IMG/VR virus record: IMGVR_UViG_3300006931_000029
Span: 124,001-188,000 of that record
Length of the DNA: 64,000 nt
Direction: 5' to 3' (one strand)
In this document: positions 3,700-54,271 of the stretch, piece after piece
Layout of the letters: each line of letters opens with the position of its first letter
Numbering within the stretch: the stretch's first letter is position 1
Translations under genes and position numbers: made by a program
The notes under the pieces: model-generated
Databases searched by the model: none
The model's input: only the letters and a program-made list of their open reading frames with translations
Told to the model about the DNA's origin: nothing

Positions 3700-4059
3700 C
3701 TAAGTATCACTCTTCTGGTCGCTCCGAACTAGCTTGAGAAGGTGACCGTATCTTCCTGTGAATCTTTCCACCTTGAGCGGAAACGACGGCTCCTCAATCT
3801 TCGAAAATCGTGAAGCCGTCAGGCACGGTTCGTAATTTTTTGGCCCACCTTCAGGCGGGGATCGTCGACCTATTTTCTCGCCATGCGGTGCGAAAACGAT
3901 TAGGTCGATGGTGCCGTCCGACCAGGTTTCTTTAACCTTTCCGAACGTTGGGCTATGATCGTCCGTGTGATCTTTGACCCAGTCTCCGGTTTTGAACGGA
4001 AACTTATTTTTCTGTGTTTGCTTTAGGGGCAAGTTTTTCCTTAAGAGCCAGTTCAACAA
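3700..4059 (-). CDS. hypothetical protein
   Basis: 119 aa, fills the gap; start uncertain (overlaps the ATPase end). Confidence 0.55.
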   Translation of the reverse strand: MLNWLLRKNLPLKQTQKNKFPFKTGDWVKDHTDDHSPTFGKVKETWSDGTIDLIVFAPHGEKIGRRSPPEGGPKNYEPCLTASRFSKIEEPSFPLKVERFTGRYGHLLKLVRSDQKSDT

Positions 4060-8580: not shown

Positions 8581-8656
8581 GCTTCGATAGCTCAACTGGT
8601 AGAGCAGGGTTCTCTAAAAACCTTGGTTGTGGGTTCGATTCCCATTCGAAGCGCCA
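8581..8656 (+). tRNA. amber suppressor tRNA (anticodon CUA), tRNA-Trp-like body
   Basis: 76-nt cloverleaf: GCTTCGA/TCGAAGC acceptor, GCTC/GAGC D stem, GGGTT/AACCT stem with loop CT-CTA-AA (anticodon 8614-8616), GTGGG-TTCGATT-CCCAT T arm, G73, encoded CCA. Confidence 0.93.
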
Positions 8657-8924: not shown

Positions 8925-8992
8925 CAGCAGGCAAATAAGTTTTTTACTTTCTCGTTTACAATCGCGAGAAAAAGTATCCATGCTTGACTGTC

Positions 8993-9467: not shown

Positions 9468-9539
9468 GTTGAATTTGTTTCACTTTTTTTGTTTACATTG
9501 ACGAAGCCTTAGGCATTGTCGATGACGTTCTACTTCACC

Positions 9540-9812: not shown

Positions 9813-9908
9813 GGCAGAGTCGCCGAACGGTGAGCCGCAAGGCTCTTCAGGCCCGGGTGTCCGGAAGGAGACTCGTCTATGTAGGTTCGAATCCTACCTC
9901 TGCCTCCA
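9813..9908 (+). ncRNA. tRNA-derived RNA (Cys-like body) without an anticodon loop
   Basis: GGCAGAG/CTCTGCC-T-CCA acceptor, GTAGG-TTCGAAT-CCTAC T arm, GCC/GGC D stem with inserted GAGCC-GCAA-GGCTC hairpin, CGGGT/ACTCG stem capped by TCC-GGAA-GGA. Confidence 0.75.
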
Positions 9909-12180: not shown

Positions 12181-12975
12181 TTACCCGATAGCCCAGATGC
12201 GAATCACACCTTGACCACCTGCGCCACCTGCGCCTGAAAAACTTGGGTTCGCGGAACGGCCACCACCGCCACCACCGCCTCCGCCCATGAAACCGGCTCC
12301 ACCGGTTCCACCGCCCGCGCTACCACCACCTCCACCGCCGCCACCCGTGCCCCAGTTTTTTGACGACGTTGGCGCTGCGTTAGCTGCGCTTCCGCCTGCT
12401 AACGTGCTGCCGAGCTTTCCACCGTTTCCACCAGCAACCGCGGCATTGCCACCTGTTTGGCCGGCGCCGTTTCCGCCGCCACCACCAGCGTCAGCTGTCG
12501 CCGGTGTTGACGCGCCAGTGTTTGCCCCAGCGCCGGCGACACCACCTTGGATTGTGGTGTTGGCAACGCTGCCTCCGTTTCCAGTAACATTTCCTGCACC
12601 GTTGCAGCCGCTTCTTCCACCCGTGCCGCCACCGCCGCCGCGAGCGCGGAGAATAACTGTGCTGCTGGACGTGACCGTCGAGTCGCCGCCCGTACCGCCT
12701 GTGTTGCCTGTGTCAGCTTGAACAGCTGTACCGCCAGCAGCGGCCGATCCTACTGCTGCGGTCAAGCTAGACGCTACGTCGGCCGTAGCGAAGAAAGACG
12801 TCGCGAAACCTCCGCCTTGACCTCCACCACCTCCCGGATTTGTTACGCCGCACTGAGAAGAGCCGCTACCACCACCGCCGCCACTGCCAATCGCCTCGAT
12901 GATTAGCATGTCGGCAGACGTTGGAACAGAGTAGCTGTTCGAGCCCGTCGTGTAGACTGTGAGTGTGACTGCCAT
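12181..12975 (-). CDS. glycine-rich virion/tail-associated protein (paralog 3)
   Basis: YSVP...IIEAIGSGGGGG...AGFMGGGGGGG...GVIRIWAIG. Confidence 0.8.
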   Translation of the reverse strand: MAVTLTVYTTGSNSYSVPTSADMLIIEAIGSGGGGGSGSSQCGVTNPGGGGGQGGGFATSFFATADVASSLTAAVGSAAAGGTAVQADTGNTGGTGGDSTVTSSSTVILRARGGGGGTGGRSGCNGAGNVTGNGGSVANTTIQGGVAGAGANTGASTPATADAGGGGGNGAGQTGGNAAVAGGNGGKLGSTLAGGSAANAAPTSSKNWGTGGGGGGGGSAGGGTGGAGFMGGGGGGGGGRSANPSFSGAGGAGGQGVIRIWAIG

Positions 12976-15136: not shown

Positions 15137-17371
15137 TTAAGTAGCGAACAGCCAGAGAAAACGAGGGTCGTTGCCGGCCACGCCCTGGAAACCTTGATTT
15201 CCCTGGAATCCTTGAAAGCCTTGCGTTCCCGTTGCGCCTTGAACTCCTTGAGGACCTTGGAAACCCTGATTTCCTTGCGATCCTTGGGAACCTTGAGAAC
15301 CCTGCGATCCCGCAGGTCCAGCGAACGCGAATGTGAAACAGACCTCGTCATTCAGCGAGAACGTTGTACCGGAATCGTCCTGGTACGTGACAGCGAATTT
15401 GCGATAGCCGGTCGCCGACACCACGCTTCCTGTGAAGATGAATGTTGCAAACGTGTTGACGTCTGCCTTCTTGTAGACCTTTATCGTGCCGCGGTTGGTA
15501 GACGATCCGAAGTTGTCCAACGAATCCAACCATCCTGTGACGTCAACCAACGACTCGTTGAGCAAGTCAACATAAAGGAACGTAACAGAAGCATAGGTCG
15601 CGTTGTTGAACTTCAGGAAGCCATCGCCAGGATCAGAGTCGGCTGTGTTGGTGTTGAAGAAGAAAATCTGCGTGTCGCCGCCGGCACTAGAATCACCGGA
15701 CGAACCTTGGAATCCTTGCGAGCCTTGAGAACCCGTCGAGCCCTGGTTGCCTATAGACCCTTGGAATCCTTGCGAGCCTTGAGCTCCTTGATTTCCTTGA
15801 GCGCCCGTGCTTCCCGCCGCTCCTTGCGCACCAGTCAATCCCTGGAAACCCTGGCGGCCCTGGAAACCTTGTGCGCCTTGTGCGCCGTCGTTGCCGGGCG
15901 CTCCGGTCAATCCTTGAACACCTTGGTTTCCTTGGTTGCCAGTGTATGTCCACGTGAACGCAATGTCATTACCAGCAGTGAACGTCGTGCCTGAAGAATG
16001 CTGGAACGTGACGGCAATCTTTCGATAACCCGTCGCCGTTGTGACGCTTCCAGTGACGATGAACGTAATGAAGACGTTTGCATCTGCGCTCTTGAACAAC
16101 TTGAGCACGCCGCGGTTCGTCGACGAGCCAAAGTCGTCGATAGCATCCAACCACGTTGTGATGTCGACGCCACCTTTGTTGAACGTGCTCGCAAAAATCT
16201 GGGTGACAGAAGCGTAGGTCGCGTTGTTGAAACGGACCTTGCCGCTACCCGGGTCTGCGTCGCTCGTTCCGGTGTCCCATGTGTAGATTTGTGTGTCGCC
16301 GCCAGAACCTTCGCTGCCCTGCGCACCTGTAGAACCCTGATTTCCTTGGAAACCCTGAGAGCCCGTAGTTCCAGTTGAGCCTTGGAATCCCTGATTACCC
16401 TGCGAACCTTGGAATCCTTGGAATCCCTGCGCGCCATCGGGAGGACCTTGGAATCCTTGGAATCCCTGACTGCCTTGTGATCCTTGTGCTCCCGCAGTTC
16501 CGGCTGAGCCTTGACTACCTTGCGATCCAGTCGACCCGGTCGCACCTTGAAAACCTTGAAAGCCTTGCGCTCCAGTTGATCCCGCCGCTCCTTGAAGTCC
16601 TTGGAAACCTTGGCGACCTTGGAATCCTTGCGAGCCTTGAGCACCCGCTGCGCCTTGCGAACCCTGAAATCCCTGCGCGCCATCAGGAGGACCTTGGAAT
16701 CCTTGAAAACCCTGTGCACCTTGAGAGCCAGTTGAACCTTGAAATCCCTGCGAACCCGTCGTTCCTGTCACGCCTTGGAAACCTTGACGACCTTGGAATC
16801 CCTGCGCACCTTGCGATCCCGTGGTTCCAGTTGAGCCTTGGAAACCTTGGTTGCCCTGCGCTCCGCTGATGCCATAAGTGAAGATCGCGACTCCCGTGAA
16901 AACAGGAGACGGCGCTGCTGAGAAGACCGTGCAAGTTAGCGTGACGGTCGAATTGATGTTGTCGAACGAAACGTTAGTGATGCTGTAGACAACGTGTGTC
17001 GAAGAGTTCGTCTCGAGATAGATGACAAAGTGAGACGGTGCCAATCCCGAAAACCAACTCGAAGCGTTCTGACCCGCAAGGTTCGTTTGATTTGCGACAA
17101 TGGCTGTTGCGAGTTGAGGGCTCGCATTGTTCAATCGGAAAGTTCCAGTCGTTGGATTTCCAGTCGTCAGCGACGAATAGGTGTAGCGCTGCGACGGCCC
17201 GCCTGCTGTTCCTGTCGGCCCTTGAAAACCCTGAAATCCTTGAAAACCCTGAGCGCCCTGATTCGCGTCCGCGTAATCTTTGTTGACTGCGTCTTTGCCA
17301 TCAACCGGTGCACTCAAACCAGCCAACCGCTGGTTTTCGAGCGTATTGCCTCTTTGAATGATCGGAACCAT
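15137..17371 (-). CDS. collagen-like tail fibre protein
   Basis: N-terminal LSAPVDGKDAVNKDYAD knob motif, G-x-Q triplet tracts (QGFQG), three repeated globular domains. Confidence 0.85.
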   Translation of the reverse strand: MVPIIQRGNTLENQRLAGLSAPVDGKDAVNKDYADANQGAQGFQGFQGFQGPTGTAGGPSQRYTYSSLTTGNPTTGTFRLNNASPQLATAIVANQTNLAGQNASSWFSGLAPSHFVIYLETNSSTHVVYSITNVSFDNINSTVTLTCTVFSAAPSPVFTGVAIFTYGISGAQGNQGFQGSTGTTGSQGAQGFQGRQGFQGVTGTTGSQGFQGSTGSQGAQGFQGFQGPPDGAQGFQGSQGAAGAQGSQGFQGRQGFQGLQGAAGSTGAQGFQGFQGATGSTGSQGSQGSAGTAGAQGSQGSQGFQGFQGPPDGAQGFQGFQGSQGNQGFQGSTGTTGSQGFQGNQGSTGAQGSEGSGGDTQIYTWDTGTSDADPGSGKVRFNNATYASVTQIFASTFNKGGVDITTWLDAIDDFGSSTNRGVLKLFKSADANVFITFIVTGSVTTATGYRKIAVTFQHSSGTTFTAGNDIAFTWTYTGNQGNQGVQGLTGAPGNDGAQGAQGFQGRQGFQGLTGAQGAAGSTGAQGNQGAQGSQGFQGSIGNQGSTGSQGSQGFQGSSGDSSAGGDTQIFFFNTNTADSDPGDGFLKFNNATYASVTFLYVDLLNESLVDVTGWLDSLDNFGSSTNRGTIKVYKKADVNTFATFIFTGSVVSATGYRKFAVTYQDDSGTTFSLNDEVCFTFAFAGPAGSQGSQGSQGSQGNQGFQGPQGVQGATGTQGFQGFQGNQGFQGVAGNDPRFLWLFAT

Positions 17372-20219: not shown

Positions 20220-20343
20220 GTTGCCCCTAAATACGCAGGTCAAGCAGAGTGTAGTTAGCGTCATGGGCACCATCCACGAAACCAATCGTCGTCGCGCATC
20301 GGCTCTGGCAAGCCAAATGTGACCTAGCGCTTTACCCGCCGCC

Positions 20344-20724
20344 ATGCAACCACCCGATCAAGAAGAACGGCTGAACGCTCCGCCACCTTACCGGCCGAGC
20401 ATCGATAGGATTTTCCTTGACAAACTAAGCGAGTCCGATCGCTACCTGGTCACGAAACTGGATTCCGTGGACCAGCGTATTGAGTGGTTAATCGTGGTCG
20501 CTCTCTCGAGCCACAACCGAGGCATCGACCTAGCGTCTTCTGTCAGAAAGTTAGAGGAACGTGTCGCCAGATTGGAACAGGCGAACGACCCAGAAGACAA
20601 AAGTATGCTCAAGTGGATTCGAGAGAATGTCATGGCTCCTGCTAAGATGGTCGGTTGGTTGATCGCCACCGGGATTGGAGCCCTGATCGTTGTTCTTCTA
20701 GAAAAATACTTTGGCAGCAAGTGA
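20344..20724 (+). CDS. coiled-coil protein with C-terminal TM (holin/XhlA-like)
   Basis: VRKLEERVARLEQ coiled coil; MVGWLIATGIGALIVVLL TM helix. Confidence 0.6.
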   Translation: MQPPDQEERLNAPPPYRPSIDRIFLDKLSESDRYLVTKLDSVDQRIEWLIVVALSSHNRGIDLASSVRKLEERVARLEQANDPEDKSMLKWIRENVMAPAKMVGWLIATGIGALIVVLLEKYFGSK

Positions 20725-21149
20725 ATTCACTCACCGACTACGTCAATCGGCTTCTCCGTCCTTCCAGAATCCTACTGGTTGAGGACGACGAAGCAGTTTG
20801 CGCTGTCATAGAGTCGCTAGCCAAGAAGTTCAACTGCGAGATGATGACCGTCCATACGGCGAAGGACGCGCTGAGAGAATCTCTCGAAACCAAGTACGAT
20901 CTCGTCCTGCTCGATTACCAGTTGCCGGACGGCAACGGTGTTGAAGTGTTTAAGACAATCCGGGCCAAGTCATGTGACGTGCCGGTTTGTATCGTGACAG
21001 GCTTTCTATCCGAACACCTGATCGATCAAGTGAAGGATATTGGATTCGCAGTCTTCGTGCAGAAGCCGAAGGACTTGACGATGAAGAATCTGATCAACAT
21101 CTTCATGACGTTCGGCATCAAGCCGAACCCGGCTGCAGAAGCCGGATGA
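20721..21149 (+). CDS. stand-alone response-regulator receiver domain
   Basis: GTG start overlapping the upstream TGA; ILLVEDD, YDLVLLDYQLPDGNG, CIVTG, QKP. Confidence 0.92.
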   Translation: MNSLTDYVNRLLRPSRILLVEDDEAVCAVIESLAKKFNCEMMTVHTAKDALRESLETKYDLVLLDYQLPDGNGVEVFKTIRAKSCDVPVCIVTGFLSEHLIDQVKDIGFAVFVQKPKDLTMKNLINIFMTFGIKPNPAAEAG

Positions 21150-21526
21150 ACCTAGCCGAACATGTCGTAGATGTTTTGCTTGAAGCCGTGCCGTCGTCAC
21201 TTCGAGTGAACCTAAGGTTTGCGCTTGATGGCCACGACGACGAGTTGGTTCTGCCCGGACTTGTGTCTGTTGAGAGCGCTCCGAAAAATACCTACGGTGG
21301 AGCATGGCGTTTGACGGTCTTCGACGCAAAGAAAACCATGGGTTTACTCCACATCAACTTCGAGTTGGATGGACAACCAACTCTAGAGAAGGTTCAACAG
21401 GTGCTTGGGCCAGACCATGACGCGTACGAATACTTGCTCGGAGACATCAACGATTGGCTCGAATCGTCTTCCGGAGAATTTGCCACTGACTTCTCCGTGG
21501 AAGGCGTGTCCGCCCCACCCGCTTGA
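21146..21526 (+). CDS. acidic protein with N-terminal VVDVLLE tag
   Basis: ATGA-coupled start MNLAEHVVDVLLEA. Confidence 0.7.
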   Translation: MNLAEHVVDVLLEAVPSSLRVNLRFALDGHDDELVLPGLVSVESAPKNTYGGAWRLTVFDAKKTMGLLHINFELDGQPTLEKVQQVLGPDHDAYEYLLGDINDWLESSSGEFATDFSVEGVSAPPA

Positions 21527-21530
21527 CCAA

Positions 21531-21878
21531 TCAGGTGGGACCCCTTTGAGGGTCAAGTCTCGAGGTGCTTACTCATAAGTGTCAGCGCGGAGAATCGAAA
21601 AAGAAAACGGTGGACGCGAGGGAGGAGTTCGGGTTTGCTAGTTGTTTCCTAAGCTGGGCAGGACCGCTTCACTGTCCCGTTCAACGCCTTGCGGCGAAGA
21701 CCCATGTTGCTTTTTCCATCCCCACAGAACCGCTGCTCAAGCCCCTAAAGCGGGGCTCTCATAACGATTGCCGAACTACCAGAGCAGTCTCCGTCGAGAC
21801 GGGAAGCAGTAGTTCATTGGCTCAGCAAAAAGGCTGACTCCGTCGAGTCAACACTCTCGGCCACCGGAAAAACGCCCC
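21531..21878 (-). ncRNA. candidate structured non-coding RNA (unrecognised)
   Basis: About 350-nt gap between convergent genes, with many hairpins and a long-range closing helix; GCAA tetraloop reads on the minus strand. Confidence 0.55.
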
Positions 21879-21887
21879 ATTAGGCTT

Positions 21888-22403
21888 CTACGACCTCTCA
21901 GCCGCTTCCGCAGAACCAGGCGTTTGTTCAAGAGAACGCTGTTCAGAATCGCCAGATTTCAACGTCAGGTTTGTTCCCCTGAGAGCAGCAATGCCGGACT
22001 CCCGGGCCAAATCTTGCAGCGTAAACAGGTAATTCTTCGCCAATTCGTAAGGGTCTGCGCTCATGAATCCGTACATCGGCGAGTACGACCGCCGATCCGA
22101 GTACAGCTCAAGGGAGAAGGCGAGACCGTTGTGGTAGCTGCCGAGCGAGTCAGATTGTCCACGAGCAAACACCCTGACGTTGCGAGCGTCGTAAACGAAC
22201 GACTCGATTCTTGCGTCGTTGTCCCTGATGATAACGCCGTCTCCTCTCACGAAGATGGCAATTCCTTTGCCCATTTCACCGCAGGAAAAACCCATCTTGC
22301 GAAGGATTTTCAGCGTAACCCACCAAACACTGGACGTGTCATCGGCAGGTTCCTTTGGTGCCAGTGCAAGCAATGAATTTCTGTTTACGAGTTCCAATTC
22401 CAT
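21888..22403 (-). CDS. hypothetical protein
   Basis: 171 aa; GTTCT 10 nt upstream. Confidence 0.65.
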   Translation of the reverse strand: MELELVNRNSLLALAPKEPADDTSSVWWVTLKILRKMGFSCGEMGKGIAIFVRGDGVIIRDNDARIESFVYDARNVRVFARGQSDSLGSYHNGLAFSLELYSDRRSYSPMYGFMSADPYELAKNYLFTLQDLARESGIAALRGTNLTLKSGDSEQRSLEQTPGSAEAAERS

Positions 22404-22419
22404 ACGTAAGGTGAGAACA

Positions 22420-22824
22420 ATGAAGCCTGCGAATCTAGTGGATCAAATGCTGGAGACCGACAGTGAGCCTGCGCGTGAGCCAACTCCTAGTTTGACGGTT
22501 CCAGACGCTGGCATGTCTCGGTATCCGAAGGATGAAGAGGCCACTCGCAACGCTGTCGAGAAAGTCGGGGATGGACAACAGCCGGATGAATTTTTCGTGT
22601 CGATCGGCGACGAGTTCTACGAGGACGAACCTGAACAATCCGGCGAGAGCTACAGCATCGGCCAGTTTGCCGATCCGAAGGAAGCCGAGAAGATGTTCAA
22701 CAACGTCGAGCTGAACGGCGCAGAAGGACCGCGCTGGGTTTCAGTCGAGAATCGTCTCAAAGGCCTGATCAAGCAACGCTACCTGAAGAAGGTGGTGAGC
22801 TATCAGGAGGAGACACGGGACTAG
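22420..22824 (+). CDS. acidic protein with N-terminal PANLVDQMLE tag
   Basis: ATG 22420; ends TAG TAG. Confidence 0.7.
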   Translation: MKPANLVDQMLETDSEPAREPTPSLTVPDAGMSRYPKDEEATRNAVEKVGDGQQPDEFFVSIGDEFYEDEPEQSGESYSIGQFADPKEAEKMFNNVELNGAEGPRWVSVENRLKGLIKQRYLKKVVSYQEETRD

Positions 22825-23089
22825 TAGGAGCAGTGCCGGACGAGAACTGAGTCGGGTGTTCCTGATCGGCGCCGTCGTAGTTGGCGCTGACCAATTCGCG
22901 CAGCGAGAAGGCAACGAACGGGCCTTTGAACTGACGAAGGTCTTCTCTCGATTGAACTAGTTCGGCTTGCTTGGCAGTCAAGACGAGAATCCGTTTACCA
23001 GATCGAAACTCTTCGACAAACGCAGCGGCACGCTCAGGTTTGAACGCCGTTGCGCCTGACTCACCGAGTAACTGCTTGATGAGCGTCAT
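22769..23089 (-). CDS. tagged small protein (LIKQLLGE)
   Basis: ATGA-coupled. Confidence 0.65.
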   Translation of the reverse strand: MTLIKQLLGESGATAFKPERAAAFVEEFRSGKRILVLTAKQAELVQSREDLRQFKGPFVAFSLRELVSANYDGADQEHPTQFSSGTAPTSPVSPPDSSPPSSGSVA

Positions 23090-23373
23090 AGCACGATCCA
23101 GTCTACTCCTAATCTTTCCATCGTGTCTAAGAGTTTGGAGGCTTCGGCTGAGAATTCAGCGACGTCGACTTCAACCATCTGCAGCGTGCCGACTTCGATG
23201 GTAGCGCCATCGTCGACGTTGAGATAATCTCTCAAGCCGCGCGACAGACCGACATCTTGAGCTTTGATTGCTTTGTAGATTTTCGGGCCGTTGCTGCCTG
23301 GATTTCCAACTTGAGCGGCATCGACAGGCGCTTCGCTCAACATCTGATCCACGATTGTCTTGGCGTTGTTCAT
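23086..23373 (-). CDS. tagged small protein (IVDQMLSE)
   Basis: ATGA-coupled. Confidence 0.7.
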   Translation of the reverse strand: MNNAKTIVDQMLSEAPVDAAQVGNPGSNGPKIYKAIKAQDVGLSRGLRDYLNVDDGATIEVGTLQMVEVDVAEFSAEASKLLDTMERLGVDWIVL

Positions 23374-23654
23374 GAGAATCCGGTTACGTCTGTGATGACC
23401 TTGGCAAATTCAGGACGCGCGCAAACTTTTGCCGCGGCATTTTTCAATGCCTGAGCGAGGTTGAATCGGTCGCTGGTCTCAGCGTTGGGCGTCATCACGA
23501 TGTCGATACCTTCGAGTTCAGTACCGTCAAGGCTGATGCTAACAGTCATGATGCGACCGCGTCGTGAAAGCTGGCGCGAGCGTCGGCCCTTATTGGCATC
23601 GCCCTCGGGTCCTTCTTCGTTGAGAAGCTTGTTAACTGTGTCAGAAGGTTTCAT
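23370..23654 (-). CDS. tagged small protein (PSDTVNKLLNE)
   Basis: Probable start MKPSDT at 23654, overlapping the upstream TGA. Confidence 0.7.
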   Translation of the reverse strand: MKPSDTVNKLLNEEGPEGDANKGRRSRQLSRRGRIMTVSISLDGTELEGIDIVMTPNAETSDRFNLAQALKNAAAKVCARPEFAKVITDVTGFS

Positions 23655-24169
23655 GGGTGTCCCGGCCTTGGCGGCCAAACTGGTTGAGCTTTCTGTTGTT
23701 GCAGCGGAGTTCTGCCTTCTCCGTATCCTAGCATGAAGCAAGCGAGCCGAGCGTACCGTCTTGCTTCTTCCGGGTTCTTGACTAAGTCGTTGGCTTTATC
23801 GATGCAGAGTGTCCAACACTCCTCCTTCATGCGAGCGTCGTACTCGGGCGAGTCTGGGTCTAAGTCTTCTGGTGCTACGTCGCCGAGGTATTGTTCGACC
23901 TCGTCCTTGATTCTTTTGACGATTGGATTTTCTCCACGCTCGGTGATCGAATCTTCGCTCAGCAGTTGCTCAACCACGCCGCTTGGCGTGAGGTCAGGAA
24001 GTACTTTGAAGAAGTCGAAATCAGAGCCGTCTTTTCCGTCAGAAACAGGTAGCTCAACGATTTCGCCGGGCTTCACGTCGCGAGGATGGCATTCACGCTC
24101 GCCTTCCCTAGTCTTGACCACAACGTGGTCATAACGGTCAAGAAGGTCTTTGTGCCGGATCATCCGCAT
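23651..24169 (-). CDS. acidic protein with internal PSGVVEQLLSE tag
   Basis: 172 aa; TGTTTACA 34 nt upstream. Confidence 0.7.
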   Translation of the reverse strand: MRMIRHKDLLDRYDHVVVKTREGERECHPRDVKPGEIVELPVSDGKDGSDFDFFKVLPDLTPSGVVEQLLSEDSITERGENPIVKRIKDEVEQYLGDVAPEDLDPDSPEYDARMKEECWTLCIDKANDLVKNPEEARRYARLACFMLGYGEGRTPLQQQKAQPVWPPRPGHP

Positions 24170-52319: not shown

Positions 52320-52678
52320 TTTTTCTTAAACGCTTCCAGTTCCGGCGGGCCATAGACGTTGTCGACGGCTGAGTTTGCCGTATACCGAGCGTCGCTCGAT
52401 CCAGCGCCATTGTCAATCGCCTTGTTGAAGACTGACCACCAGAGAACTGCTCGGTCGCCGGCAACCACCATAGTCGTGGGAAGCGGAAGCTTCGCCGGTT
52501 GCTTTGCGTCCTTGTCCATGTAGACGATGATGTCCGGACCAGGAAAATAGACGTGAACGTAAGCGTTCACCAGCAGCGTTCCGCAGATGAACAATACCGC
52601 AAGGGCGATTGCCACGTCGCGAGGATCGAAATACTGCCACCAGCGTTTGCGTGGCGGCGGGTTGCTGAGCTGCTTCAT
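52316..52678 (-). CDS. membrane-anchored hypothetical protein
   Basis: Single TM helix. Confidence 0.6.
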   Translation of the reverse strand: MKQLSNPPPRKRWWQYFDPRDVAIALAVLFICGTLLVNAYVHVYFPGPDIIVYMDKDAKQPAKLPLPTTMVVAGDRAVLWWSVFNKAIDNGAGSSDARYTANSAVDNVYGPPELEAFKKK

Positions 52679-53190
52679 GGTTCGATGATCTTAGCGATTG
52701 TGGCTAGCGCTTCCTTTGTAGAGTGGTGCATTCCAGTCGTGAGGTAATCAGAAATCCGCTTAGCCTTCTGCTCAGGAGAACTGTCTGGCCATTTGGCCTC
52801 CGGAATCTTGGATGCGTCTGTCAGCAGGGTGATGCCGTGAACGCCATGAAAATCAGCACGAACTCGGATGACGTTTGATTCGATCGTCTTGAACAAATAG
52901 CCCTGCGGACATTCCTTGATCAAGTTTTCAACGTCGTCCTTGTTGATGCAACCGTACTCCGACCGGTCCGGATTGTCGCCGTTCAGTATTTTGAATGGCC
53001 GAGTGAGGAAGCTGTTGTTCAGCCCGATGATCGAAATGAACTTGGTGGATGGACCGTAAGCAGTCAGCGTGCCGGCTCTAGGATCATTCCACCAGACGGC
53101 GCAGCTCCTGCACTCGCACCACTTGGGATTCTCAGCGATGCGGCTGGGAACCACCAAGCTGCCACAAGAGTGGCAAAACATCATCTTCAT
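52675..53190 (-). CDS. zinc-ribbon protein
   Basis: CHSC...CECRSC. Confidence 0.65.
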   Translation of the reverse strand: MKMMFCHSCGSLVVPSRIAENPKWCECRSCAVWWNDPRAGTLTAYGPSTKFISIIGLNNSFLTRPFKILNGDNPDRSEYGCINKDDVENLIKECPQGYLFKTIESNVIRVRADFHGVHGITLLTDASKIPEAKWPDSSPEQKAKRISDYLTTGMHHSTKEALATIAKIIEP

Positions 53191-53474
53191 TTGCCGAACC
53201 CGCCGCCACCCTTCTTGAAGTCGTCGACAGTGATGTCGCTGGCCCTGAAGACGACGAGAGGATAGTAAGGAGCGAAGATTGACACGCTCTCGTTGCTATT
53301 GCGATGCCACCGCGCGAACAGAGCCATCTGAACTTCCAGGAGTCTGGTCATGTCCCTGTCCACCTCCGGTGAAAGTGGAACGGTCACACTGGGATAAACC
53401 AGTCTCAGCCGAAGTTCCTCAGCTGAAAGTTCCTCATCAGTCCACTCTGAATAACGGTGTGCAACGACTCTCAT
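53187..53474 (-). CDS. hypothetical protein
   Basis: Start MRVVAH overlapping the Tad1 stop. Confidence 0.5.
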   Translation of the reverse strand: MRVVAHRYSEWTDEELSAEELRLRLVYPSVTVPLSPEVDRDMTRLLEVQMALFARWHRNSNESVSIFAPYYPLVVFRASDITVDDFKKGGGGFGK

Positions 53475-53896
53475 TTGGTATGGGTGCCCTCTACTCCGCG
53501 GGCTAGACGGTCTTTGGTTCTCTTCTGTAACCACTCGAGTGCAGATTCCAGATGCTTCAGAGCCTCAGCGTTTTCCACACAGGCGTATTTGCCTGGGATG
53601 CTGAAGTTGAACGAGCTGTCCTCGTTGCGGGCGTACTGGAATCCCCGCATGCGATCGATGGCAACGGCGATAATCGCTTCGTTCGTAATGCCGTTACGGT
53701 CGGCTGGGGTTTGAATCGGTCCGTTTTGGAACCGAAGGTTCACGCCGAACGGTACGCGCTCACCAGCAATCGCGCCGGCTTCGCCAATGATGTCGTACTT
53801 GTGGTTGGCACCGCCAGGACCTGGCGCGTCAACAGCTGCGATTTCGATGGCTTCGTTGAGACCGCCGACAATGTGATTTGAGATGATGCGTTTCAT
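53471..53896 (-). CDS. tad1: Tad1-like anti-Thoeris/anti-CBASS signal sponge
   Basis: GPGGANHKY, FQNG, NGITNEAII...DRMRGFQ, ENAEALKHLESALEWL..RT.DR..RGVEGT match the Tad1 family pattern as recalled. Confidence 0.75.
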   Translation of the reverse strand: MKRIISNHIVGGLNEAIEIAAVDAPGPGGANHKYDIIGEAGAIAGERVPFGVNLRFQNGPIQTPADRNGITNEAIIAVAIDRMRGFQYARNEDSSFNFSIPGKYACVENAEALKHLESALEWLQKRTKDRLARGVEGTHTK

Positions 53897-54271
53897 TTAG
53901 TAGGGTGGATTTTTGGTTAGTTCCTCAGCGATGCAGAACTTTCCCCTTACTCTTGTCATCAAAACCTCTTTCGCAATGTCCGGTCCGGCGGCGAAGTCGC
54001 AGTGAGCCATGCTCTGTGGAAAACCAGTTGCTTCGAAGGCCCACTTAGTCAGGTCGTCTAGCGTAGCCAACGTCTCAGCTGTCGGTCCCCATTCGTCATG
54101 AATGATCCAGACGTCTGGCCTTCCGTACAATCGAACGGTCAGCCTGTTCGCTTGATGAATCCAATAGGAGCGGCGTCGCCTGCTGCGTTGGCGATCGACG
54201 TTGCGGTACGCTCTGGCAATCTTGTGCAGTAGCCGAGAACGAGTACACGCGTCTAGTTTTGGTGTCTTCAT
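53897..54271 (-). CDS. hypothetical protein
   Basis: Probable start MKTPKL at 54271. Confidence 0.5.
   Translation of the reverse strand: MKTPKLDACTRSRLLHKIARAYRNVDRQRSRRRRSYWIHQANRLTVRLYGRPDVWIIHDEWGPTAETLATLDDLTKWAFEATGFPQSMAHCDFAAGPDIAKEVLMTRVRGKFCIAEELTKNPPY

Follow-up and report, generated by a model that had tools for sequence, protein, structure and literature searches.

What is encoded in a stretch of about 360 nt that lies between two convergent phage genes, shows no credible ORF, and yet is rich in complementary segments? The stretch belongs to a 225-kb soil phage, IMG/VR record IMGVR_UViG_3300006931_000029 (224,954 bp, with direct terminal repeats). The DNA analysed here, referred to below as the window, comprises 64,000 nt corresponding to bases 124001-188000 of that record, and all coordinates are those of the window. 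A first-pass annotation, made from the sequence alone, had proposed an unrecognised structured RNA of approximately 350 nt at 21531-21878 and interpreted it as a trans-acting phage ncRNA. We present a comparative analysis of this region, from which we infer that it holds a gene for a large, elaborately folded noncoding RNA in the sense of the minus strand, matching no known RNA family.

Setting and coding potential

The gap covers 361 nt (21527-21887) between a plus-strand ORF ending at 21526 and a minus-strand ORF ending at 21888. The former (20987-21526) has homologs of about 126–129 amino acids and is absent in some related phages. To the left lie a receiver-domain (CheY-like) gene (20655-21149, plus strand; Pfam PF00072, E = 2.5e-19), which is the constant syntenic neighbour of the element, and tail-fibre-like genes with collagen repeats and a glycine-rich domain. 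To the right, on the same strand as the RNA and upstream of it, lies a 171-amino acid ORF of unknown function (21888-22403, minus strand), followed by other small genes of unknown function. The AlphaFold2 model of the 171-amino acid protein was too poor to use (mean pLDDT 49), and no partner protein has been identified.

The gap is not coding. Codon-usage log-odds scores are about 0 in all six frames, compared with 0.15–0.27 for the neighbouring genes, and this also holds when TAG is read through, which yields no credible ORF. Stop-free frames exist, but they differ in frame and strand between homologs, and 58 of 79 alignment gaps are not multiples of three. A protein gene, read under table 11 or with TAG as a sense codon, is therefore very unlikely.

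On its own the sequence is not remarkable. Its predicted fold is no better than that of shuffled sequences on the plus strand (z = -1.06), and only slightly better on the minus strand (z = -2.0), such that an argument based on the single sequence would be weak. One fact does stand out: the 10-mer CTCCGTCGAG occurs only twice in the whole 225-kb genome, both times inside this gap and 49 nt apart.

Homologs in related phages

A blastn search of phage GenBank with the region returned nothing. Scans of IMG/VR with the two flanking proteins, two conserved RNA patterns and a receiver-protein profile found no relatives other than the phage's own record. The twin-loop pattern gave 42 loci in IMG/VR, many with several regularly spaced matches, which were judged unrelated from the match pattern alone. 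A scan of GTDB genomes with a conserved 20-base pattern found nothing, and a pattern scan of metagenomes gave the own record, one related contig (L044) and one unrelated ORF-poor sequence (L048/L049), which shares only a 22-nt string of the beta hairpin described below and scores 13 bits with our model of the 3' domain. In a further contig (L046), carrying a 58%-identical homolog of the 171-amino acid gene, the DNA downstream is not alignable and has no match to that model, although this contig may end too early.

A word-indexed protein search was more productive, revealing relatives of the 171-amino acid protein, the receiver protein and the 126-amino acid protein upstream of it. The contigs carrying them gave nine distinct lineages: the window itself and those represented by contigs L044, L051 (a 229-kb phage), L053 (a 222-kb phage), L056, L057, L058, L060 and L064. 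All show a gene-free gap of 358–446 nt following the receiver gene, or one extra ORF of about 126 amino acids, whatever the next gene is. The extra ORF is absent in L053 and other lineages. In the lineages represented by L056, L060 and L064 the 171-amino acid gene is missing, and a 135-amino acid gene on the other strand follows. The gaps align end to end at about 51–89% identity. The nucleotide identity of the RNA region to the window is 65–90%, about equal to that of the receiver gene (66–89%).

Consensus structure and strand

With the exception of the ninth lineage (L064), which was added later, the homologs were aligned and folded using RNAalifold. The minus-sense alignment gives a consensus energy of -88.2 kcal/mol and 87 predicted pairs, 42 of which show compensatory double changes, while the plus sense gives -66.4 kcal/mol. 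With L064 included the same helices are found, with 74 pairs, 35 of which show double changes. We curated a set of 94 pairs from the RNAalifold pairs, two extra pairs in hairpin A and a pseudoknot. In this set 92.8% of 745 cells are standard pairs and 47 pairs carry double changes. Column shuffles give 80.7±0.8% (maximum 83.1) and 28.7±3.1 (maximum 37), respectively, and sliding the 3' partner by 1–3 columns gives 36–46% and 7–16. Since the nine lineages come from a single phage clade, these shuffle controls, which are not an R-scape-type test, overstate the significance.

The folded molecule has the sense of the minus strand. When this strand is read there are 83 G·U cells and 12 A·C cells; on the plus strand these numbers swap. 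In addition, one hairpin carries a tetraloop which reads GCAA only on the minus strand. The first-pass annotation had described the element on the plus strand.

The observation made in that annotation is confirmed: all the complementary segments it listed are present where it placed them. Compensatory changes in the homologs support CGGTGG/CCACCG together with CGAG/CTCG, both twin hairpins, GAACTAC/GTAGTTC, AGCCCC/GGGGCT and CGCC-GCAA-GGCG. Two of its pairings are not supported. The local hairpin GACCC/GGGTC is paired in 85% of cells with one double change, and competes for bases with a better-supported loop-loop pseudoknot. The proposed pseudoknot AGTTCGG/CCGAACT is paired in 72.7% of cells, and is complementary only in the window and its closest relative, L044. 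The element is also larger than the 348 nt proposed. Its minimal conserved structured span is about 417 nt, running at least from 21509 to 21925 and overlapping the last codons of both flanking ORFs, while its core, from helix P1 to helix alpha, covers about 360 nt (21509-21867).

Anatomy of the predicted RNA

Read 5' to 3' on the minus strand, the predicted RNA begins with helix P0 (21870-21925; 5' strand 21925-21915, 3' strand 21880-21870), in which four pairs (70/121, 71/120, 73/118 and 74/117 of its alignment) show double changes. It encloses the stop codon of the 171-amino acid ORF, and its loop is 42 nt here but about 18–22 nt in lineages without that ORF tail. The last 25 or so residues of the 171-amino acid protein, which overlap P0 and conserved upstream nucleotides, are poorly conserved as protein, although the DNA under them is conserved even in lineages that lack the gene.

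An 11-bp long-range helix, P1, closes a multi-branched domain of about 250 nt. Its 5' strand (CCGGUGGCCGA; 21857-21867) pairs with its 3' strand (UCGCGUCCACCG; 21608-21619), and corresponds to the CGGTGG/CCACCG and CGAG/CTCG pairings. Its 11 pairs are 89.7% paired, five with double changes. Within the domain, hairpin A (21830-21856), the first of the twin hairpins, is 90.8% paired, with six pairs showing double changes and 14 G·U but no A·C cells. Its loop, CGACGG, is invariant (plus-strand CCGTCG at 21840-21845). Hairpin B (21770-21821) is capped by the same invariant loop (plus-strand CCGTCG at 21791-21796). Its inner stem is 100% paired, with five of six pairs showing double changes, and its outer stem, which includes GAACUAC/GUAGUUC, is 87% paired with seven. 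The stems of the two hairpins vary freely; the inner stem of B, for example, is GUCUC/GAGAC here, UUCUC/GAGAA in L044 and CCUGC/GCAGG in L053.

The twin sites, G[AT]CTC-CGTC-GAG[AT]C, lie 49 bp apart and are unique in the genome, which raises the question of whether the element works at the DNA level, as a folded single-strand origin or primosome site, an operator pair or a packaging site, with the twin 5-bp inverted repeats as protein-binding sites. G-T wobbles are also tolerated in folded single-stranded DNA. However, variable stems with fixed loops are the opposite of what a double-stranded operator would show, and long-range helices, a GNRA tetraloop and a loop-loop pseudoknot with strand-asymmetric wobbles are typical of RNA. 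We consider this explanation very unlikely.

Helix P3 (UUGCU, 21828-21824, with AGCAA, 21711-21707) closes a sub-domain (21707-21828) holding hairpin B, hairpin C (21740-21757; the AGCCCC/GGGGCT pairing) and a conserved purine-rich strand (21720-21727). It is 97.5% paired with one double change. A Y-shaped sub-domain follows (21656-21703), consisting of an outer stem (21703-21700/21659-21656), the GCAA-tetraloop hairpin (21685-21696), an invariant AACG and hairpin D (21678-21660). The stem of the GCAA hairpin differs in 6 of 8 lineages yet always pairs, and in hairpin D four of five pairs show double changes. A pyrimidine-rich strand then precedes the 3' strand of P1. A further long-range pairing, between the purine strand (about 21727-21720) and the pyrimidine strand (about 21627-21620), is suggested by L053, L057 and L058 but is not established.

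Directly after P1 is a linker (21592-21607; alignment columns 301-332) which is U-rich in all lineages, and which in the L057/L058 lineage carries an extra small hairpin. It leads to an 83-nt 3' domain (21509-21591), a four-helix junction of alpha (21591-87/21513-09), beta (21586-21567), gamma (21566-21540) and delta (21539-21514). The beta hairpin carries the longest invariant strings, GACAC and UAUGAGUA; its AGUA and GA elements recall, by resemblance only, a loop-E or bulged-G module. The domain is locked by a 7-bp loop-loop pseudoknot (21522-21557) between CUUGACC in the gamma loop (21557-21551) and GGUCAAG in the delta loop (21528-21522). The pseudoknot is paired in 56 of 56 cells, three of its pairs show double changes, and its two departures from Watson-Crick pairing are G·U on the minus strand.

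A covariance model of the 3' domain scores 91–104 bits in every lineage and finds a single copy in the phage genome. The domain is 95.6% paired compared with 85.9±1.3% in shuffles. None of 500 shuffles reached the observed values for four of the five measures (percent of cells paired, pairs and cells with a change on both sides, and covariation score), whereas for the fifth, further standard pair types, 91 of 500 did.

Over the whole element the invariant runs of four or more columns are the two CGACGG loops (each including its closing C-G pair), GACAC and UAUGAGUA in the beta hairpin, and four runs that extend into helix strands or junctions: UUUUGC, GCAAC, AACG and UCUCCG.

Transcription signals and relation to the flanking genes

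No sigma-70-like promoter was found in 20300-23000, and no terminator follows the 3' domain. A conserved GUUCU about 8–11 nt upstream of P0, with AAUCUGG further upstream, may be part of a phage promoter, but this is unproven. The motif AATCTGG-N-GTTCT occurs six times on the minus strand, against about one expected for a slightly different form of the pattern, and several copies lie inside ORFs just before the next start codon.

One alternative is that the region contains only cis-acting end signals of the two convergent genes, such as terminators or 3'-UTR stabilisers. A terminator scan calls hairpin A plus CUUUUUG terminator-like on the minus strand, and finds a weak terminator-like site at 21691-21710 on the plus strand. 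However, the number of such sites equals the shuffle expectation (3 against 3.0), and the U-run after hairpin A is the 5' strand of helix P3, which pairs with GGCAA about 115 nt downstream. Conservation and covariation cover the whole 360–417 nt, and the element persists where the minus-strand gene is absent. This explanation is also very unlikely.

A more serious possibility, though one to which we give less weight than to a single RNA, is that the element represents two units. The first would be an RNA of about 330 nt, from P0 to P1, ended by P1 plus the U-rich tract acting as an intrinsic terminator, and the second a separate 83-nt structured RNA or a read-through extension. In agreement with this, the GC-rich 3' strand of P1 is followed directly by a U-rich tract in all lineages, although the sequence of the tract varies (alignment columns 289-320); the L057/L058 lineage has its inserted hairpin in the linker; and the 3' domain is a self-contained junction. 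On the other hand, the strands of P1 lie about 250 nt apart, which is unusual for a terminator. The two parts are always adjacent, in the same order and with similar spacing, and the scan found no promoter or terminator signal belonging to the 3' domain itself.

The element always lies tail-to-tail with the receiver gene or the ORF inserted after it. In 6 of 8 lineages the last 18–22 nt of that ORF, including (in the window) its TGA stop, lie inside the delta hairpin and pseudoknot strand, giving a 22-nt overlap. Both flanking ORFs thus simply run on into the putative RNA gene. The element might therefore act mainly as an antisense or convergent-transcription regulator of the receiver-domain gene, its structure serving only to stabilise the RNA. 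We regard this as unlikely, since in the lineages represented by L056, L060 and L064 the receiver gene stops just outside the RNA, so that overlap is not conserved, and since a simple antisense RNA would not need about 94 covarying pairs, a GNRA loop and a pseudoknot.

Comparison with known RNA families

Of the three grounds for rejecting the proposal that had been named beforehand, a match to a known Rfam family, a lack of covariation among homologs and a lack of transcription, the first two were not observed. Of the 4227 families of Rfam 15, none matches the element at its gathering threshold, the only such hits in the window being two tRNAs elsewhere. At E ≤ 10 there are two hits at 21878-21949 (E 0.8 and 9.9), overlapping only the P0 region at the 5' edge. 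In seven homologous loci two isolated and mutually unrelated weak hits fall inside the RNA, each in one lineage only: Polynucleobacter-1 in L057 (18.4 bits against a cut-off of 37; E 6.5) and SpR10 in L058 (19.9 bits; E 4.8).

A strongly diverged member of a known family also remains very unlikely, in spite of the size, which is like that of RNase P RNA or tmRNA, and the fact that the phage carries tRNA genes, an amber-suppressor tRNA and a Ro60-like TROVE protein. A tmRNA would have a tRNA-like domain (acceptor stem from the 5' and 3' ends, T-arm), a tag reading frame and an SmpB partner, but ARAGORN finds no tmRNA, no Rfam tmRNA model matches, no conserved T-loop is present in the alignment, and the genome has no SmpB. 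RNase P RNA is defined by the conserved P4 pseudoknot and the CR-I to CR-V sequence blocks; there is no match to its models up to E = 10, and the only P4-like pairing is the unsupported AGUUCGG/CCGAACU. For group I and group II introns, which are inserted in a host gene with flanking exons and have a conserved catalytic core (P3-P8 with P7, or domain V), there is no Rfam match and no downstream minus-strand exon, because the opposite strand encodes the receiver gene. No hits to GOLLD, ROOL, HEARO, OLE or raiA were found up to E = 10, and no IscB- or TnpB-sized gene is adjacent. Reverse transcriptase (RVT_1) and RtcB genes are absent from the genome.

Interpretation

What the analysis itself establishes is a conserved, single-copy, noncoding element, present in nine lineages, whose minus-strand transcript would fold into a two-domain, pseudoknotted structure under clear selection for pairing. 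We are highly confident that it is a structured minus-strand RNA, although this rests on sequence comparison alone. Transcription, including its strand, ends and abundance, is inferred. From the persistence of the element where the upstream co-oriented gene is missing we infer a stand-alone gene with its own promoter; action as a folded RNA in trans, most likely as the RNA part or scaffold of a phage ribonucleoprotein, is likewise inferred. In this view the two identical loops would serve as a pair of binding sites for a dimer or for two copies of a protein, the GNRA loop and the pseudoknot(s) would build a compact tertiary core, and, where the convergent ORF runs into the 3' end, the two transcripts would be mutually antisense. 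The combination of variable stems with invariant loops, two identical loops, a GNRA loop and a locked 3' junction fits a protein-binding scaffold or ribonucleoprotein core best, but a catalytic role is possible. Our confidence in this full statement, including action in trans as a scaffold or ribozyme, is only moderate.

The interpretation given in the first-pass annotation is thus supported in part. A conserved, structured, noncoding RNA-type element that is absent from Rfam, distinct from tmRNA, RNase P and HEARO, and located in a cluster of small phage genes is upheld; the trans action remains inference, and the strand, the extent, one local hairpin and the pseudoknot required correction.

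More speculatively, and with a low probability, the element could be a new class of functional RNA machine specific to a clade of jumbo phages, either a new ribozyme or a self-assembling or protein-organising RNA. Its two CGACGG loops, GNRA loop and pseudoknots would form an active or assembly core acting during infection, for example on host or phage RNA, or within a virion or replication complex.

Large RNAs with this much conserved structure are rare. Those whose role is known are ribozymes or cores of ribonucleoproteins, and the orphans (GOLLD, ROOL, OLE, raiA) have recently proved to form unexpected architectures. A compact example of about 400 nt, fixed in position in the roughly 225-kb phages of this clade, would add a new RNA class and a tractable object for probing, cryo-EM and activity assays. 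It would also point to an RNA-based function in jumbo-phage infection that protein annotation cannot see. What is new is the RNA family; the broad kind, an orphan large structured phage RNA, has precedents.

Related systems

A published survey of candidate structured RNAs in IMG/VR (PMC10690425) likewise found conserved structured elements in phage intergenic regions by comparative analysis. It reported motifs of 29–151 nt and required at least three distinct IMG/VR regions. The present RNA is far longer and, in our scans, only the window's own record in IMG/VR carries it, so that it would probably have been missed.

Bacterial and phage Y RNAs (YrlA), bound by Ro60/Rsr, are structured RNAs that tether proteins (PMC4201824), and this phage encodes a Ro60-like TROVE protein next to a tRNA cluster. 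Y RNAs are, however, 80–130 nt long, are encoded next to Ro60, contain a tRNA-like domain and carry a GNCGAAN0-1G or GGUCCGA motif in the terminal stem (PMC4201824). The RNA described here is three times longer, lies about 92 kb from the TROVE gene, has no tRNA-like domain, gives no Rfam Y_RNA match and, on inspection by eye, lacks the motif.

The prohead (packaging) RNA of phage phi29 is a phage-encoded, trans-acting structured RNA that works as part of a protein machine and uses loop-loop contacts. It is about 120–174 nt long and its loops pair between molecules. In our RNA the predicted loop-loop pairing lies within one molecule and the two identical loops are not complementary to each other; no homology was found.

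A further comparison is with the large "ornate" orphan RNAs of bacteria and phages, GOLLD, ROOL, raiA and OLE. There is no sequence or structure match to their Rfam models, and the present RNA is known only from one clade of about 225-kb phages in metagenome and public-run assemblies. GOLLD and ROOL are often carried by phages or prophages (bioRxiv 10.1101/2024.12.08.627333). Like these RNAs, the element is hundreds of nucleotides long, noncoding and of unknown function, with many covarying helices, pseudoknots and GNRA-type loops. At about 360–420 nt it is smaller than GOLLD, ROOL and OLE, which are about 600–800 nt.

Genes and sequence motifs flanking the structured RNA

Several of the small proteins encoded to the right of the RNA, at window positions 22420–22824 (+), 22769–23089 (-), 23086–23373 (-) and 23370–23741 (-), and also at 3870–4277 of L056 (a contig representing a related phage lineage), begin with a similar N-terminal motif of the type K-x-[ILT]-V-[DEN]-[QK]-[ML]-L-x-E, for example MKPANLVDQML and MNNAKTIVDQML. 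This is probably what the first-pass annotation, which located the RNA within a cluster of tagged proteins, had referred to, and the motif may be a targeting or packaging signal. The 134/135-amino acid member is the constant neighbour on the 5’ side of the RNA. Just to the left of the receiver gene and RNA locus are tail-fibre-like structural genes, specifying a 744-amino acid protein with collagen triple-helix repeats (15137–17371, minus strand; E = 2.3e-50) and a protein with a glycine-rich domain (12181–12975, minus strand).

The motif [AGT]ATCTG[GA]-N9-17-GTTCT[CT] occurs six times in the phage genome (contig G000:C1), always on the minus strand, at 188635, 185439, 178658, 175356, 145932 (window 21932–21958) and 40141, against approximately one expected occurrence, although the latter figure was computed for a slightly different pattern. 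One copy is located just upstream of the P0 helix of the RNA, and three others lie 5–11 nt before a start codon. The motif could be a promoter or another shared signal. A second possible phage promoter motif is found in two gene-free stretches (window 8930–8990 and 9470–9530, plus strand), which share a T-rich run followed by GTTTACA and, about 30 nt later, a start codon. Lastly, an exact 22-nt copy of the string found in the beta hairpin of the RNA (GACAC-N-TATGAGTA-N-GCACCTC), followed by a small hairpin, is carried by an unrelated, ORF-poor metagenome sequence (L048, 2772–2795; L049, 1960–1983). Since R1, the covariance model of the 3’ domain of the RNA, gives this sequence only 13 bits, the resemblance is probably due to chance.

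tRNAs and the TROVE-domain protein

A tRNA with the anticodon CTA (amber suppressor) is located at window positions 8581–8656 (+). ARAGORN labels it as tRNA-Pyl, and it scores 65.8 bits with Rfam. Yet 27 of the 156 long ORFs in the genome end in TAG, including the 171-amino acid gene beside the RNA, so this codon is not wholly recoded. A call of tRNA-Glu(TTC) at 9813–9908 (+) is unusually long (96 nt), and its Rfam score of 31.6 bits is marginal against a cut-off of 29; it may have a long insert or be a tRNA-like element.

The phage also encodes a 520-amino acid Ro60-like protein containing a TROVE domain (PF05731; E = 7.8e-13) at approximately 52566–54128 (-) of the genome, corresponding to positions 889–2451 of L062, the sequence of this locus. 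The gene lies directly downstream of a cluster of at least five tRNA genes on the same strand (L062, 2526–3303). The lowest-scoring full-length “tRNA” of the cluster (35 bits), which is the one next to the TROVE gene, could be a tRNA mimic resembling YrlA.
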